Sequence record: NC_049849.1
DNA length: 64,000 bases
Direction: 5' to 3' (one strand)
The notes under the pieces were generated by a model, which was not told where the DNA came from, did no database searches, and was given only the letters and a program-made list of their open reading frames with translations. Made by a program: the position numbers and the translations under genes. This document shows positions 24,114 to 56,605 of this stretch, in pieces; the stretch's first letter is position 1; each line of letters begins with the position of its first letter.

Positions 24114-24326
24114 ATGGAAACGCAACTTCAAGCAATCAAGAATATGATTTCTGACTACTTCGGTGACACCTCGCGGCCGGCGCATGAAACGCGTGAGGGT
24201 CTGGAAGACATTGCCAGTCACCTCGACTCGCTGCTCGACGTGCTGCCCAGTGATGATGACGCAGACGACTCGGACTGGGACAACGAAAGCGGTGATGACG
24301 ACGAAGATGTGAGTGACTGGGAATGA
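24114..24326 (+). CDS. small, highly acidic protein
   Basis: TAGGAG SD; D/E-rich C-terminus. Confidence 0.6.
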   Translation: METQLQAIKNMISDYFGDTSRPAHETREGLEDIASHLDSLLDVLPSDDDADDSDWDNESGDDDEDVSDWE

Positions 24327-24619
24327 TTGAGTCACCGGATGACGGAGTAGACGACCTCGACGACGAAGATGGTTGGTTCGGCGATGAGGACGCATGGTGT
24401 GAAGAGTGCGGCGGCGTCATTGGTGAGGACTGCGCGGCTTGGTGTCAGAGCAGGATAGAAGACGCAGAGAACGAGCAGGCAGAAAGCGACGAGCTGGACG
24501 AGATAGACCGGATGTGCGATCCGGCTATGCTTCCGCCCTTCACGAAGGCGGAGATAGACGCCGCTAAAACACGCGCAGAAGAACGCGCCCAATTGATGCG
24601 TGAGATTGATCCTATCTAA
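24323..24619 (+). CDS. small, highly acidic protein with CxxC
   Basis: ATGA overlap; CEECGG motif; D/E-rich. Confidence 0.6.
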   Translation: MIESPDDGVDDLDDEDGWFGDEDAWCEECGGVIGEDCAAWCQSRIEDAENEQAESDELDEIDRMCDPAMLPPFTKAEIDAAKTRAEERAQLMREIDPI

Positions 24620-24645: not shown

Positions 24646-24772
24646 ACGGGGACTACAGCGGTGTTGCATAAAAACAACGCCGGTCTGTAGTCCCTGTTTT
24701 CGTGATATCATATCTACACGGGGAAGTACAGTCCCGACATTCTTGTAATCCGTCGAATAGGAAAATCCGACA
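24646..24772 (+). promoter_or_regulatory. structured regulatory element, copy 1 (long hairpin + TGaTATCAT extended -10 + leader hairpin + SD)
   Basis: GGGACTACAG/CTGTAGTCCC and CGGTGTTG/CAACGCCG stems; near-identical copy at 33220. Confidence 0.75.
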
Positions 24773-25111
24773 ATGAAAAATCCCGCACAAGCTTGGCCGT
24801 TTCCCGTTGGTACAGACGCCAGCGGCAATGGTGTGTATCTCCCGCTGACGTGGCCGGTTCAATCGAAAGAAGAAATTGAACGCGACGCGAAAGAAGACGC
24901 CGTAAAAGAAACCGTACGCGAGTACGTGCGTTTCAATTGGCCGTTCACTGAATCCGATGTGAACTTCCAAGCCGTGGTGCAATTCGTACGCGACGGCAAG
25001 CTGTTGAATGCCGAGGACGCTTTGATGACCGACGCGATTGAACGCGGCATTGAAGACGCATTCGAGGACGCCCGCAACGACTGGAACCAATGCGGCGGCC
25101 TGGTCAACTAA
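24773..25111 (+). CDS. hypothetical protein
   Basis: First gene after regulatory element copy 1; TAGGA SD. Confidence 0.65.
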   Translation: MKNPAQAWPFPVGTDASGNGVYLPLTWPVQSKEEIERDAKEDAVKETVREYVRFNWPFTESDVNFQAVVQFVRDGKLLNAEDALMTDAIERGIEDAFEDARNDWNQCGGLVN

Positions 25112-32682: not shown

Positions 32683-33215
32683 GCAAAACCATCGACTGGT
32701 GCATCAATCAAACTCTGCCTGTGGCGCTGATCGACATTGATGGTGTCGTGTGCGACAACCGGCACCGCCTTCACTACTTGGTCGAAGTCGTTGATGGTGT
32801 TCAGCGTGAGAAGGAAGTCACTGACTGGGCGACGTACGAATCGGAATGGCGTAAGGATACGCGAGGTGCGGGCTGCCCGGTCGTCAAGAGCCTGGCTCAT
32901 GTGTACAGCATCGTGTTTCTCACGGCGCGGGAAGAAATGTCTGATGAGGACCAGAAGGAGCTGCTGCACACGCTGGCCGAATGGTGCGGTCTCAATCGTG
33001 CGGCGCTGATTATGCGCGAGCGCAACGTGGCAGGCATTCAGCGCCCGCCGGCGTCTGTATTCAAAGCAGAGGTTGCGGAATACATGCAAAACGAAGGCGT
33101 TGAAATCGGCCTGTTCATTGATGACTCGCAAGATAACGTCATCGCAATGGCCGGCTTGTCGATCCCCAGCATGCGCCTCTACAACCACCTGAACGAAACC
33201 AACCTGCACTACTGA
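32670..33215 (+). CDS. HAD-family phosphatase (T4 PNK 3'-phosphatase-like)
   Basis: LIDIDGVV motif I; FLTAREE motif II; LIMR; FIDD motif IV. Confidence 0.8.
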   Translation: MRNLSKTIDWCINQTLPVALIDIDGVVCDNRHRLHYLVEVVDGVQREKEVTDWATYESEWRKDTRGAGCPVVKSLAHVYSIVFLTAREEMSDEDQKELLHTLAEWCGLNRAALIMRERNVAGIQRPPASVFKAEVAEYMQNEGVEIGLFIDDSQDNVIAMAGLSIPSMRLYNHLNETNLHY

Positions 33216-33219
33216 TTGC

Positions 33220-33334
33220 ACGGGGACTGCAGCGGTGTTGCGTAAAAACAACACCGGTCCGCGGTCACCGTTTTTGTGATATCATATCTATACGAGGCAC
33301 AGTCCGCCTCGGAGTCTGTGAATAGGAAAACGAT
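33220..33334 (+). promoter_or_regulatory. structured regulatory element, copy 2
   Basis: GACTGCAG CGGTGTTG CGTAAAAA CAACACCG GT CCGCGGTC then TGATATCATATCTA, CGAGGC/GCCTCG hairpin and GAATAGGAAAA; matches 24646. Confidence 0.75.
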
Positions 33335-33610
33335 ATGAGCAAGAAGCATCCGATCAACAACGGTCTGCCTGCCGGCCTGCATTTCTCCGATATCAAGATA
33401 GGCGACGAGTTGGTCATCGGTTGGAACGACGCTCCAGAGGAAAAGGTGATCGTGCTGGCGTCGCCCGGCCTACTCCATCCGAAGTCGTACAAAGGTGGTG
33501 TAACTATCCGGGTTATGTCTGACGCTGACAATCATCGAACCCTGCATAGCAGTATCGACGGAGCGCAAGTGATCGAACGTACCGGGCGCAACATCTTCCA
33601 GCTGCTGTAA
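33335..33610 (+). CDS. hypothetical protein, tandem paralogue A
   Basis: MSKK..NNGLP.G.HFS....G...YKG shared with the next gene. Confidence 0.7.
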   Translation: MSKKHPINNGLPAGLHFSDIKIGDELVIGWNDAPEEKVIVLASPGLLHPKSYKGGVTIRVMSDADNHRTLHSSIDGAQVIERTGRNIFQLL

Positions 33611-33672: not shown

Positions 33673-34047
33673 ATGAGCAAGAAGCAAACGCTGGTCAACA
33701 ACGGCCTGCCCGAAGGCGTACACTTTTCGGAAGTCGAAGTCGGGTCGGTCATGCGCGTGCTGTTCAAAGATAGCGAACCGCAGCACGTGCTGGTCATCCG
33801 GTCACGCGACGCGAATCGGCGGCCGACGTACAAAGGCTCGGTGTCATTTACAGGCGTGAACGGCGAGGGCGATATCATCACCTTCGACGGTGACCAGGTG
33901 CACGAATGGATCGGCACGCAGCCGCTGGCGCAACTGACGGCGGCAGACATTCTGATGAACGACACGCTGCAAGCTCAGCGTTATCCGCGTGGCACTGTTG
34001 TCCCTGACCAAGACAAGATCGACCCTGCATACGACCCAACGCTGTAA
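33673..34047 (+). CDS. hypothetical protein, tandem paralogue B
   Basis: Paralogue of 33335. Confidence 0.7.
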   Translation: MSKKQTLVNNGLPEGVHFSEVEVGSVMRVLFKDSEPQHVLVIRSRDANRRPTYKGSVSFTGVNGEGDIITFDGDQVHEWIGTQPLAQLTAADILMNDTLQAQRYPRGTVVPDQDKIDPAYDPTL

Positions 34048-34058
34048 CGAGCAAGACC

Positions 34059-34085
34059 CAGGCCTTCGGGCCTGTTCCCATTTCT
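34059..34085 (+). terminator. cUUCGg hairpin with pyrimidine tract
   Basis: CAGGCC-TTCG-GGCCTG-TTCCCATTT; same CAAGACCCAG prefix as 33617. Confidence 0.6.
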
Positions 34086-34101
34086 GCGTTCTAACTTTTC
34101 T

Positions 34102-34515
34102 GTGAGTCAACTAATGGATATCGTTGTTTGCATTCCCACCGCCGTACGTTTCGTCGTTGACGAAGAGCGTCATACCATCGCCGTCGTTAAGCGTGTGAAC
34201 GAGTGGATGACCCAATGGACTGTCCCGAACAACATCAAGGCGTATGTTGGCCCGGCACTCGGCGCGGGATGGATTCCCGAGGCAGCCGTTCGTGCATGGT
34301 CGGTTCGGTTCAATGCTGCGATGACGGCGGCCCTAGGCGCACCGTCTGCGTTCCTCTCGGCTTCGGACTTCGAGTTCACGGTTGCGGTCTCGCACCCTCA
34401 TGTGCATTCGACCGAGCGCCCTGTCGGCCTGGACCCGAACGTTGAAGGTATGATCTGGATCAACGGCGATTATGTGCGCCAGCTTCGTCTTTATGATCGG
34501 ATGGAAAACAACTGA
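34102..34515 (+). CDS. hypothetical protein
   Basis: GTG start within TCTGTG; alternative ATG at 34114. Confidence 0.6.
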   Translation: MSQLMDIVVCIPTAVRFVVDEERHTIAVVKRVNEWMTQWTVPNNIKAYVGPALGAGWIPEAAVRAWSVRFNAAMTAALGAPSAFLSASDFEFTVAVSHPHVHSTERPVGLDPNVEGMIWINGDYVRQLRLYDRMENN

Positions 34516-49959: not shown

Positions 49960-49982
49960 AGTGAATTTGCAGCTACCCAGGT

Positions 49983-50030
49983 AAAAGAAAAGCCCCTAGA
50001 GACGAAAATTCTCTAGGGGCTTTTTTTGCT
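49983..50030. terminator. bidirectional Rho-independent terminator at the strand switch
   Basis: AAAAGCCCCTAGAG...CTCTAGGGGCTTTT flanked by an A-tract and a T-tract between convergent genes. Confidence 0.9.
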
Positions 50031-50043
50031 TTGTGCCTAGTAC

Positions 50044-50805
50044 TTAGGCGTCGCTACCTTCAGCAATGAAGTCAACGATTTCATCAGCGTACTCGGGAGC
50101 GTATGCGAATGCGCGCTTCCAGTAGTCAGCTTCGCTGGCCTTGGTCGAGGCTTTGACCGGGAACGATGCCATGATCTTGTGGTGAACTTCACGCGGAATT
50201 TCGACAGGGTAGAAACCTGCAACCATGCGATTCGGCACCACCACTTCAGTCTTGGTCGTATGGCTCACCACCTTGCACTTGTCAGGAGCAGTGCGGATGA
50301 TGAAGCCGTAATCCATGTCACCCGAGGGAGTCACGAAAGCGGCGACCTCGCCACGACGGCCTTGGCCGATAGTCAGCTGATTGACCTTCGGCGTATAACC
50401 ACGGCCAAACTCGGCGGAAGCTTCGACTCGATTGTCGATCAACTCCGACAGGTTCTCATTGCCATGACGCGCAAGGTACGAACCACCCGAGCCACTCTTC
50501 ACTTCCCACAGCGACTCATCGGCTTTGTCCATAACAATGTTGGCAGCCGAACTCAGCAGGCGGTACTTGGCAGTCAGCTCTTGCTTCTCGATCACGCGCA
50601 CTTCACGATTGGCGCGGACGAAGCCGGCATACACGCCCTGCTTGACCTTGCGGAAAGAATTCTCAACAGGAGCACCAAGGTACTGCAGCTGTTCGCAGAT
50701 GGATGCGTGAATTTGCGACTTGGTCGGATTGCCCGTGGTGGTGACGATGACCTTAGCCAGGGTCGGGGTTTCCATAACGCGGTCAGTGATGTTTACGGTA
50801 TACAT
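50044..50805 (-). CDS. putative virion-associated protein
   Basis: End of the - strand structural block; GGAG SD. Confidence 0.65.
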   Translation of the reverse strand: MYTVNITDRVMETPTLAKVIVTTTGNPTKSQIHASICEQLQYLGAPVENSFRKVKQGVYAGFVRANREVRVIEKQELTAKYRLLSSAANIVMDKADESLWEVKSGSGGSYLARHGNENLSELIDNRVEASAEFGRGYTPKVNQLTIGQGRRGEVAAFVTPSGDMDYGFIIRTAPDKCKVVSHTTKTEVVVPNRMVAGFYPVEIPREVHHKIMASFPVKASTKASEADYWKRAFAYAPEYADEIVDFIAEGSDA

Positions 50806-54646: not shown

Positions 54647-56605
54647 TTACCCCTGACCGTACAGGTTACGCAGAGTCTCGGTAAAGGAGACGCCGACCTT
54701 CGAGATAACAAAGTCGATCTGCAGTTCATGCACAGGCAAGACCGGAACAATGATCACCGTGGCACGCAGGATGCCAGAGTTCACATAGGCTGCCGGGTTG
54801 TTCGAGTCATCGCAAATCACAGTGAAGCTCGAAATGCCGCGAGCAATGCGCACGGTTTCGAGATACTCACTGAACGTGCCTTGCAGCTGGCGACGCGTAA
54901 ACTCGTCGTTCGGCTGTTGCAGGATATAGAGACCAAACTTGTACAGAGAGGTCTTCATCACGTTGACGATACGACGGACTGACAACCAGGACAGTGCCGA
55001 CTTCTTGGCTTGCAGCGTCTGTTGCTCCCACAACGAGATACCCTGACCGATGAAGTTTCGAGTGTAGTTAACCTGAGCGTTAAACATCAGGTTCATTTCA
55101 CCTTCTTCATAGATGTAGCGGGTCTTCAATACAGGAACGATACCACGGTTCAGACCGGCGATAGAGAACGACGCATTGGCGACGCGATCAGTACGCGCGC
55201 ACAGTGCAGCAGCCCAGCCAGAGAACGGGATATACAGTTGCTTGCCATTGATGTTGTCGGCTTCCAGAACATCAGGATTGAACAACGAGGACCAAGACGA
55301 GTTGAGGTTCAACTCGATGTTGCGATAGTTCACTGCATCCTGGGCACGCTGCTTTGCGCTCGGCACGTCGAGGAGTGCAACTGCATCCTGACGCTTCTGA
55401 GCGATAGCATCCATGGTCATCTGAACGTTCGGGTTCGCAACGCCGCCGTTAATCAGAAGGTTGACCGTAATGGTTTCACGATTGCCAAAGGACTCCCAAG
55501 CACGTGCGATATCAAACGGCGTCGGTGCCGCACCAGACCAGCCGTTGTCCATTTCCACGATACCAGTCGACTGAACGATAGGCGTAACCGGCAGGGCAGG
55601 GACGTTGGTCGTAACTTGGATATACTGCGAGTACGGATTGATGCGCTCGGTCAGCTCGGTCGCCACGCCGTCACCGTCAACGCCTTCATCCAGCGTGCAA
55701 GGGAAAGTCTCACGCGGAGTGAACGGCGAGAACGTGTAGTCGTACACGTTGACCAGAAAGATCGGGCTCGGAGGCGGAACCTGCGCCGGATCAGTAATCG
55801 GCTTCTTCGTCGTGTCGGGAACCAGACCACCGGTGTCCGCCATTTCGTAAGTGCCTTGACCAATCTCAGCCAGCAAGCCAACATCGGCTGCCGTTTGCGA
55901 ACGACCATAGACTCGATACGCGATAGCGCCTGCGACCGGGTCCCACTTGATGGTGTTGACGTTGGTGATGCCGCCGCCTGCTGCGATCACAAGAGTGACC
56001 ACCGGGGATGCCAGAGTCTCACCCGTGCTCGACACAGCCGACACCTGATAGGCATACGTACCGACAGGTAGCTGACCGCCAGTGGTAGCCGTGGTGCCAG
56101 AAGCATTGGCCGGAGTTTTGACTTCCGTGGTTTCGATTTCAATGCCGATGGGCGAATCGCCGTCCACGTTTGCGTAACCACCGGGGCCCTTGTTCGGATA
56201 GAACATGGCGATGGGCACCGCATTGGTCGGCACCATGTTGGGCCAGGGCGGAACTTCAGGATTGGTCACGTCGACCAGGCCAGGAGCCAGATTGGTAACG
56301 CCACCATCGTTGTACAGCATGACGTTTGCGTACTTGGCACCTGCACCAACAACGCGACGACCCCACAATGCGTTGCCTTCCTTGAAGAAGTCCAGAGCGC
56401 AGTACACCGAGAAAGAAATCTTAGCGTTGGGATTGCCGAACTCGGTCAGCACCGACTGCCCCGTGGGGTAGAAGTGCATGCCAGTACGACCACGATCAGA
56501 AACGAAGACCGCGCCAGCCACACTCGAGCTAGCGCTGGTGATCACTTCCGACATATCGAATTCTTGGATGTAAACATCCGAGTGTCTGTTTTGCAAGATA
56601 CTCAT
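54647..56605 (-). CDS. contractile tail sheath protein
   Basis: DVYIQEFDMS N-terminus; C-terminal GLNRG..., LWEQQTLQ...SALS.LSVRR, FSEYLETV..ARGI..FTVICDDSNN typical of gp18-like sheaths. Confidence 0.92.
   Translation of the reverse strand: MSILQNRHSDVYIQEFDMSEVITSASSSVAGAVFVSDRGRTGMHFYPTGQSVLTEFGNPNAKISFSVYCALDFFKEGNALWGRRVVGAGAKYANVMLYNDGGVTNLAPGLVDVTNPEVPPWPNMVPTNAVPIAMFYPNKGPGGYANVDGDSPIGIEIETTEVKTPANASGTTATTGGQLPVGTYAYQVSAVSSTGETLASPVVTLVIAAGGGITNVNTIKWDPVAGAIAYRVYGRSQTAADVGLLAEIGQGTYEMADTGGLVPDTTKKPITDPAQVPPPSPIFLVNVYDYTFSPFTPRETFPCTLDEGVDGDGVATELTERINPYSQYIQVTTNVPALPVTPIVQSTGIVEMDNGWSGAAPTPFDIARAWESFGNRETITVNLLINGGVANPNVQMTMDAIAQKRQDAVALLDVPSAKQRAQDAVNYRNIELNLNSSWSSLFNPDVLEADNINGKQLYIPFSGWAAALCARTDRVANASFSIAGLNRGIVPVLKTRYIYEEGEMNLMFNAQVNYTRNFIGQGISLWEQQTLQAKKSALSWLSVRRIVNVMKTSLYKFGLYILQQPNDEFTRRQLQGTFSEYLETVRIARGISSFTVICDDSNNPAAYVNSGILRATVIIVPVLPVHELQIDFVISKVGVSFTETLRNLYGQG

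Follow-up and report, generated by a model that had tools for sequence, protein, structure and literature searches.

What does a structured intergenic element of about 120 nt do when it heads two separate groups of small genes in the same jumbo phage? A sequence-only reading had noted such an element in duplicate, with copies at 24646 and 33220, and had proposed three functions for it: a terminator-promoter insulator, a hairpin or cruciform promoter, or an undescribed cis-regulatory RNA driving clusters for early host takeover. The DNA analysed (the window, 64,000 nt of NC_049849.1) is 100% identical to positions 62001-126000, + strand, of the record of the Achromobacter jumbo phage Motura (MN094788.1; Moturavirus), whose genome is 221,431 bp long. 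Window positions equal record positions minus 62000; for a further segment of the genome, L003, position L003:24229 equals record 55229.

Motura has been placed in subgroup 2.2 of the jumbo phages, beside phiRSL1, Lu11 and PaBG, and phages of this subgroup have a gp23-type capsid (PMC7824862; PMC7412058). In the jumbo-phage group to which Motura belongs, no phage RNA polymerase is encoded, and transcription relies on the host enzyme together with phage sigma factors (PMC7824862); the group encodes a gp33 orthologue besides these sigma factors, and the host polymerase is thereby redirected (PMC7824862; PMC7412058). The closest sequenced relatives, BcepSauron, BcepSaruman, phiRSL1 and BCSR5, share only about 60% major capsid protein identity with Motura, and no close relative was found in any collection searched. 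The two ends of the record (1-81 and 221343-221423, outside the window) were identical over 81 bp, which represents either terminal redundancy or an assembly overlap.

Copies of the element and their surroundings

Both copies were present where they had been reported. Copy A (24646-24723) and copy B (33220-33297) were 86% identical over 78 nt without gaps and also had a ribosome-binding site in common. No direct-repeat family of the window ranked above this pair. When the genome was compared with itself by BLAST, the pair matched with E=1.6e-18 and was the sole dispersed non-coding repeat besides the 81-bp end overlap and one terminator pair, repeats inside coding sequence being left aside.

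The number of two did not hold for the whole genome. Fuzzy searches of the complete Motura sequence recovered four copies, of which C and D lie outside the window (Table 1), so that the family spreads over 61 kb, at 34.1, 55.7, 86.6 and 95.2 kb of the record. The sequence-only reading had recommended a covariance model and a search of related phages and Rfam with it. A model built from the four copies themselves and run over both strands of the 221 kb returned only these four (E 6e-22 to 7e-15); its remaining matches were the reverse strands of the same copies and noise. In 4/4 copies the layout was collinear: stop codon, hairpin, U-run, extended -10, 7 nt, leader hairpin, Shine-Dalgarno sequence and ATG.

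Table 1. Coordinates of the cassette parts and of other promoter-like features of Motura (window positions unless given as record or L003 positions)
Feature	Position	Strand	Details
Copy A, putative terminator hairpin	24647-24696	+	fold -35.1 kcal/mol, z -6.45
Copy A, outer stem	24647-24658 / 24685-24696	+	
Copy A, inner stem	24659-24666 / 24675-24682	+	loop 24667-24674; 2-nt bulge 24683-24684
Copy A, U-run	24697-24700	+	TTTT within TGTTTTCG, abuts hairpin; no T-run on opposite strand
Copy A, extended -10 TGATATCAT	24703-24711	+	TG 24703-24704; hexamer TATCAT 24706-24711; predicted start A24718
Copy A, leader hairpin CGGGG-AAGTACAG-TCCCG	24719-24736	+	starts 8 nt past the -10 hexamer
Copy A, GAATAGGAAAA and ATG	24755-24775	+	Shine-Dalgarno AGGA 24759-24762; ATG 24773, ORFan QDH83538
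Copy B, putative terminator hairpin	33221-33270	+	fold -27.9 kcal/mol, z -2.5
Copy B, inner stem	33233-33240 / 33249-33256	+	loop 33241-33248; outer stem with two mismatches
Copy B, U-run	33271-33275	+	TTTTT
Copy B, extended -10 TGATATCAT	33277-33285	+	hexamer 33280-33285; predicted start A33292
Copy B, leader hairpin CGAGGC-ACAGTCC-GCCTCG	33293-33311	+	third pair A-U, in the other copies G-C (compensatory)
Copy B, GAATAGGAAAA and ATG	33320-33337	+	Shine-Dalgarno AGGA 33324-33327; ATG 33335, ORFan QDH83553
Copy C	record 55714-55829		outside the window; genome-wide fuzzy search
Copy D, more diverged	record 34066-34184		outside the window; genome-wide fuzzy search
Sigma70-like promoter	record 55346 (L003:24229-24395 = record 55229-55395)		TTGCAC-N18-TATAAT
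Sigma70-like promoter	about record 50285 (L003:19263-19403 = record 50263-50403)		TATAAT
Octamer CGTAAATA	1476, 9059, 12872, 18787, 25902, 36989, 45519	+	28 more sites in the rest of the genome
AATTT[CAT]AT[AT]	61754, 60062, 54607	-	
AATTT[CAT]AT[AT]	43856	+	

A blastn search of 50,697 phage records with the element returned only Motura. The more specific sequence patterns, searched in IMG/VR, recovered Motura itself and one coincidence in coding sequence (contig L117), and the cassette patterns were found neither in JGI metagenome contigs nor in GTDB genomes. An identical 15-mer spanning the promoter box was common to copies A, B and C; in IMG/VR, the 15-mer GTGATATCATATCTA gave at least 110 matches, all of which were chance matches in unrelated AT-rich contigs without the hairpin context. 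Rfam at gathering thresholds gave no match over the whole window, and with elements A and B at E up to 10 it gave noise only (mir-3122, 15.5 bits against a threshold of 92; sR32).

A weak 6-bp stem-loop inside a gene, at record 50221-50238 (L003:19221-19238; TTGTTG-TAAAAACG-CAACAA; E=3.9), was considered as a fifth copy and was not counted; it has neither a U-run nor a promoter box. This look-alike lies in the 3' end of the gene for topoisomerase IV subunit A, and two CGTAAATA boxes and a TATAAT follow about 30 nt downstream of it.

The flanking genes, upstream and downstream, were unrelated between the four copies, and none of the genes downstream of them had a match in Pfam or PHROG; all are ORFans. 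Seven ORFs of 54-184 aa stand between copy A and a DNA ligase gene, and small ORFans follow copy B, in agreement with the earlier description of arrays of tiny unknown genes. For the PNK-like protein encoded upstream of copy B, no homologue with more than 35% identity was found among 5.8 billion proteins. The contig of the best homologue (L121, 35% identity) was considered as a possible cassette relative and contained none of the motifs. Downstream of copy B, the adjacent small genes 33335-33610 and 33673-34047 are paralogues with a common N-terminus (MSKK...NNGLP.G.HFS). A near-identical CCCAGSCCTTCGGGSCTG hairpin, ending in a T-rich tail, stands 3' of each gene, and the stretch between the two genes has no obvious promoter.

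Hairpin, predicted promoter box and leader

The large hairpin started 6-100 nt past the stop codon of a co-oriented gene in the four copies: 28 nt after the stop codon of CDS 24323-24619 in copy A, and 6 nt after the TGA (33213-33215) of the PNK-phosphatase-like gene in copy B. Folds ranged from -28 to -37 kcal/mol, and in all copies a U-run followed the hairpin on the + strand only. Four or five U stood directly 3' of the stem in A, B and D. In copy C the inner stem sits within a branched fold, and the U-run, 14 nt away from that stem, is directly 3' of a structure only if the branched fold forms. A stable stem-loop with a U-rich tract on the coding strand, after a stop codon, is what defines an intrinsic terminator, and this combination was found at the element.

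At the core of the hairpin is an 8-bp inner stem (CGGTGTTG/CAACRCCG), paired in 32/32 cells of the four-copy comparison. In copy D one G-C pair has become A-U through changes in both arms, and in copy A one U-A pair has become U-G. The 8-nt loop varied while the stem was kept, reading CRTAAAAA in A/B and TATYTWCG in C/D. Copies A and B have an outer extension of 12 further pairs beyond a 2-nt bulge. In copy D the extension consists of two G-C pairs, and the resulting 10-bp stem runs straight into GUUUUU, which is the canonical terminator form.

The differences between the stem arms of A and B had been read as transitions that preserve pairing under selection on a hairpin. One A-U to G-C compensatory change and one U.G wobble in the outer stem of copy B agree with this description, but the same outer stem also contains an A.C and a G.A mismatch, the latter produced by a C-to-A transversion. 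Because these two pairs are broken, copy B folds 7 kcal/mol worse than copy A. With four sequences only and two broken pairs in copy B, covariation argues for the hairpin less strongly than had been claimed: the observed count of double changes was reached in 24/500 shuffles, a weak statistic for four related sequences, and since no homologue was found elsewhere, the evidence from covariation is confined to four paralogous copies.

The loops of C and D (L003:24735-24742 and L003:3087-3094) matched the reverse complement of the A/B loops at 5-6 of 8 positions and their direct sequence at 1-3 of 8. Recombination between the stem arms would flip the loop and give such a match; for loops as short as these, the indication is weak.

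Downstream of the hairpin, the box TGATATCAT was present in three copies and TGATAAAAT in copy D, with TGnTAnnnT kept in 4/4. In its longer form (GTGATATCAT in A, B and C; GTGATAAAAT in D), the box lies 19-20 nt past the inner stem. As an extended -10 promoter we counted TG at -15/-14, one base and TAnnnT, with a purine as start 6-8 nt downstream and no -35 required. The four copies all had this sigma70-type arrangement, the 7th nucleotide after the hexamer being A or G in 4/4, and a start site could be predicted for each, at record 55786 in C and at about record 34139 in D (for A and B, see Table 1). No -35 was found: 16-18 bp upstream of the TATCAT hexamer stand GTCTGT, GTCCGC, GTCTTT and GGTTTT in the four copies (for copy A, GTCTGT at 24683-24688, 17 bp upstream), and an AT-rich UP region was absent from all four. 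The extended -10 without a -35 that had been reported downstream of the hairpin was thus confirmed in both A and B, where nothing TTGACA-like occurs 16-18 bp upstream. A generic promoter/terminator scan called none of the cassette sites and was not informative for them; the stem has a bulge, and no -35 is present. At the box of copy A, a negative -35/-10 scan is as expected for a -35-less promoter.

Exactly 8 nt past the hexamer, a second hairpin of 5-6 bp started in 4/4 copies, with the arms CGGGG/TCCCG in A, CGAGGC/GCCTCG in B, TGGGGA/TCCCCG in C and CGGGAT/GTCCCG in D. Compensatory changes occurred at two positions across the copies. The pairs were tabulated by script, as MAFFT could not put these hairpins in one register. 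A small hairpin around ACAGTCC had been noted before; the hairpin exists, but ACAGTCC is not its core, being loop and 3' arm in A and the entire loop in B. Since the 7th nucleotide after the hexamer is a purine in every copy, the transcript would enter this hairpin at about +2. Over its full length, the leader was no more stable than shuffled sequence (z +0.45 to -1.8). In both A and B, GAATAGGAAAA stands 7-10 nt ahead of the ATG.

Two further sigma70-like promoters of Motura (Table 1), unrelated to the cassette in sequence, showed the same layout, with a large hairpin upstream of the -10 and a 5' hairpin past it. A stable hairpin stood 6-7 nt past the -10 at record 55346 and at about 50285 (z -3.8 and -4.2), and the upstream and 5' hairpins of the two promoters taken together had z values of -3.8 to -5.0. 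The promoter at record 55346 is also preceded by a hairpin of -47.8 kcal/mol with a T-run. Because two unrelated promoters repeat the layout of the cassette, the combination of hairpin, host-type promoter, 5' hairpin and Shine-Dalgarno sequence suggests a house style of the few host-type promoters of Motura, and the four-copy family is the subset of these promoters still sharing sequence. A genome-wide scan for a -10 plus hairpin gave 11 matches against about 8 in Markov shuffles, which is no enrichment; only intergenic matches are meaningful in such a scan.

Proposed function and alternatives

We consider it probable that the element consists of an intrinsic terminator, an early promoter and a stabilising leader, which together would insulate small early units. 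It is most likely an ordinary regulatory cassette rather than a new kind of regulatory RNA. For Motura we infer from the sequence termination and promoter activity, the polymerase and sigma factor reading the promoter, the start site, the role of the leader and the early timing. The hairpin and its U-run, acting as a Rho-independent terminator, would stop or attenuate transcripts arriving from upstream genes. Right after the terminator, the -35-less promoter would rely on the extended -10 TGnTATCAT. It would most likely be read by the host sigma70 holoenzyme, early in infection, because no polymerase is encoded in the phage group, and this would make the units early. In the conserved leader of about 55 nt, protection of the mRNA 5' end would be the expected task of the 5-6 bp stem-loop, and the leader would end in the Shine-Dalgarno sequence and ATG of a small ORFan. 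Having a terminator and a promoter of its own, a small early unit would therefore be insulated from read-through and given its own start. Early host takeover is a plausible role for the downstream genes. The four copies probably stem from one ancestral sequence, spread by duplication or recombination independently of the surrounding genes.

Among the functions proposed earlier, the terminator-promoter insulator fits everything found: the U-run on the + strand only, the co-oriented stop codon upstream, TGnTATCAT, the leader and the Shine-Dalgarno sequence. With an intrinsic terminator joined to an extended -10 sigma70 promoter the cassette shares a GC-containing hairpin and U-run after a stop codon, TGnTAnnnT, and a purine 7 nt on; its only unusual property is that the whole unit is kept at four loci as an 80-86% identical repeat. 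Stem-loops at the 5' terminus, such as that of the ompA leader, stabilise mRNA. The Motura leader is like them in that a short hairpin stands no more than 1-2 nt from the predicted 5' end, in all four copies and at the two other promoters, the start in Motura being a predicted one.

At the early hairpin promoters of phage N4, which depend on the virion RNA polymerase, a small hairpin with a 5-7 bp stem and a 3-nt loop is located immediately 5' of the start. The cassette resembles them in that an inverted repeat is tied to a phage early promoter. In the cassette, however, about 47 nt separate the hairpin centre from the predicted start downstream, a U-run and a sigma70-type -10 come after the hairpin, and phages of the Motura group encode no RNA polymerase (PMC7824862). 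This does not match the N4 arrangement, and the proposal of a hairpin or cruciform promoter is not supported.

The inverted repeat GGTGTTG-N8-CAACACC (about -59 to -36) might instead be a double-stranded operator for a dimeric phage or host factor, which would activate or repress the -35-less promoter in the manner of the MotA box; at T4 middle promoters, this box replaces the -35. Such a site would agree with an inner stem that is near-identical in four otherwise diverging copies and quite different from the stems of other Motura terminators, with a palindrome held 19-20 nt from the -10, and with a box that has no -35 element. The fixed spacing, however, is also predicted by recent common descent, and a centre at about -47.5 is an unusual position for an activator. 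Copy A breaks the palindrome yet keeps the RNA pairing through a U.G pair; copy D alters both arms together, from G-C to A-U; the 8-nt spacer is free to vary and may even be flipped. In addition, pairing in A and B extends 12 bp outward, which an operator does not need, and the + strand U-run accompanies the hairpin in every copy. An operator is thus quite unlikely. We think it equally improbable that the long hairpin of A and B (about 20 bp) is mainly an RNA processing or stability element, either an RNase III-type site or a 3' protective hairpin, within a read-through polycistronic transcript like those between T7 genes. It is true that the stem of A and B, interrupted by a small internal bulge, is about two helical turns long, that the U-runs are short, with 4-5 U, and that each of the successive genes downstream of B ends in a hairpin without an evident new promoter, so that hairpins of Motura may often attenuate transcription or stabilise transcripts. 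But C and D keep only the inner stem of 8-10 bp with its U-run, too short for RNase III and typical of a terminator, and each copy has a promoter-like box that read-through expression would make unnecessary.

A further question is which sigma factor would read the box. If GTGATATCATATCTA with the G-rich start were a promoter for a phage-encoded sigma factor, the four units would be middle rather than immediate-early. Group 2 jumbo phages do encode sigma factors of their own (PMC7824862), and over about 25 nt (TTTYGTGATATCATATCTAYAYGRGG) conservation exceeds what a minimal -10 requires. On the other hand, the diverged copy D retains hardly more of this stretch than the TGnTAnnnT positions, the two Motura promoters of the same layout have a canonical TATAAT, one of them with the -35 TTGCAC, and CGTAAATA, far more frequent with its 35 copies, and AATTTCATA are better candidates for promoters of phage sigma factors. 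A phage sigma factor at the cassette is therefore unlikely. Highly improbable is a new structured cis-regulatory RNA (a riboswitch, attenuator or translational operator) controlling the downstream gene, even though the leader is conserved in the four copies and its small hairpin is kept in position. The large hairpin lies upstream of the predicted start, and the leader of only about 55 nt folds no better than shuffled sequence and contains no leader ORF. Rfam gave no match even at E up to 10, and no homologues beyond Motura were found in the collections searched. With four unrelated downstream genes, nothing points to a common ligand or autoregulator. The proposal of an undescribed cis-regulatory RNA was not sustained.

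The closest parallel to the terminator-promoter cassette that we favour is the promoter-early stem-loop (PeSL) of T4-type phages, an intergenic motif, some 100 bp long, that recurs within a genome (Arbiol et al. 2010, PMC2839356; Comeau et al. 2014, PMC4122927). In a PeSL, a terminator stem-loop is combined with a sigma70-like promoter, and a Shine-Dalgarno sequence and start codon complete the motif; promoter and terminator activities have been demonstrated in experiments (PMC2839356). PeSLs adjoin ORFans and have been implicated in modular gene shuffling and mini-circle formation (PMC2839356; PMC4122927). Hyperplastic regions contain them in clusters of many copies, with a preference for sites next to ORFans, and recombination from copy to copy gives rise to insertions, deletions and replacements among close relatives. 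The Motura cassette appears analogous to PeSLs, not homologous. Judged by sequence, stem-loop, sigma70-like promoter, Shine-Dalgarno sequence and ATG were combined in one motif in 4/4 copies. Like a PeSL, the cassette is a conserved intergenic motif of about 100 nt in which a terminator stem-loop and a host-type early promoter are followed at the end by a Shine-Dalgarno sequence and start codon; it is repeated in one genome beside small ORFans, in a phage that relies on host RNA polymerase, and its copies resemble each other more than their flanking genes do.

The differences from PeSLs are several. The cassette has no sequence similarity to published PeSLs and occurs in four copies instead of dozens. 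Its stem-loop lies wholly upstream of the promoter, whereas in RB49 and phi1 the stem-loop is mostly between -35 and -10 or over the -10. The promoter itself departs from the PeSL type, with an extended -10 in place of a -35 and an AT-rich UP region and a negative result in the promoter scan. An additional conserved leader hairpin is present at the 5' end in Motura, which is a phiRSL1/BcepSauron-like jumbo phage and not a member of the Tevenvirinae. It appears doubtful that the cassette is a PeSL-like mobile module beyond the T4 subfamily, with copies serving as recombination hot-spots that move ORFans and an inverted repeat, at its fixed distance from the -35-less promoter, doubling as RNA terminator and as a DNA operator that turns the immediate-early units on or off.

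If confirmed, the cassette would mark four of about six recognisable host-type promoters in a 221-kb jumbo phage and thereby point to the handful of ORFans that are the likeliest first to be expressed upon infection. The concept of portable terminator-promoter cassettes would then extend from T4-like phages to a distant jumbo lineage. The cassette opens neither a new RNA class nor a new mechanism; its main use would be to indicate which Motura genes are probably immediate-early.

Other repeated motifs of Motura

With about 1.4 sites expected per strand, the octamer CGTAAATA, usually in the form AAATCGTAAATA, had 35 on the + strand and two on the - strand. Its position is often just ahead of a gene, and a hairpin often follows. 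The sites have the appearance of a phage-specific class of promoter serving early or middle blocks of + strand genes, and the octamer resembles the T4 late box TATAAATA. A second motif, AATTT[CAT]AT[AT] (e.g. AATTTCATA), was about four-fold enriched, with 20 sites genome-wide, mostly just upstream of structural genes, and is a candidate late-promoter motif.

At the convergent junction of the + strand block and the structural genes, a bidirectional terminator (AAAAGCCCCTAGAGA...TCTCTAGGGGCTTTTTTT) was found at 49979-50025. An inverted copy of it, 87% identical, lies at the other convergent junction, record 175710-175755.
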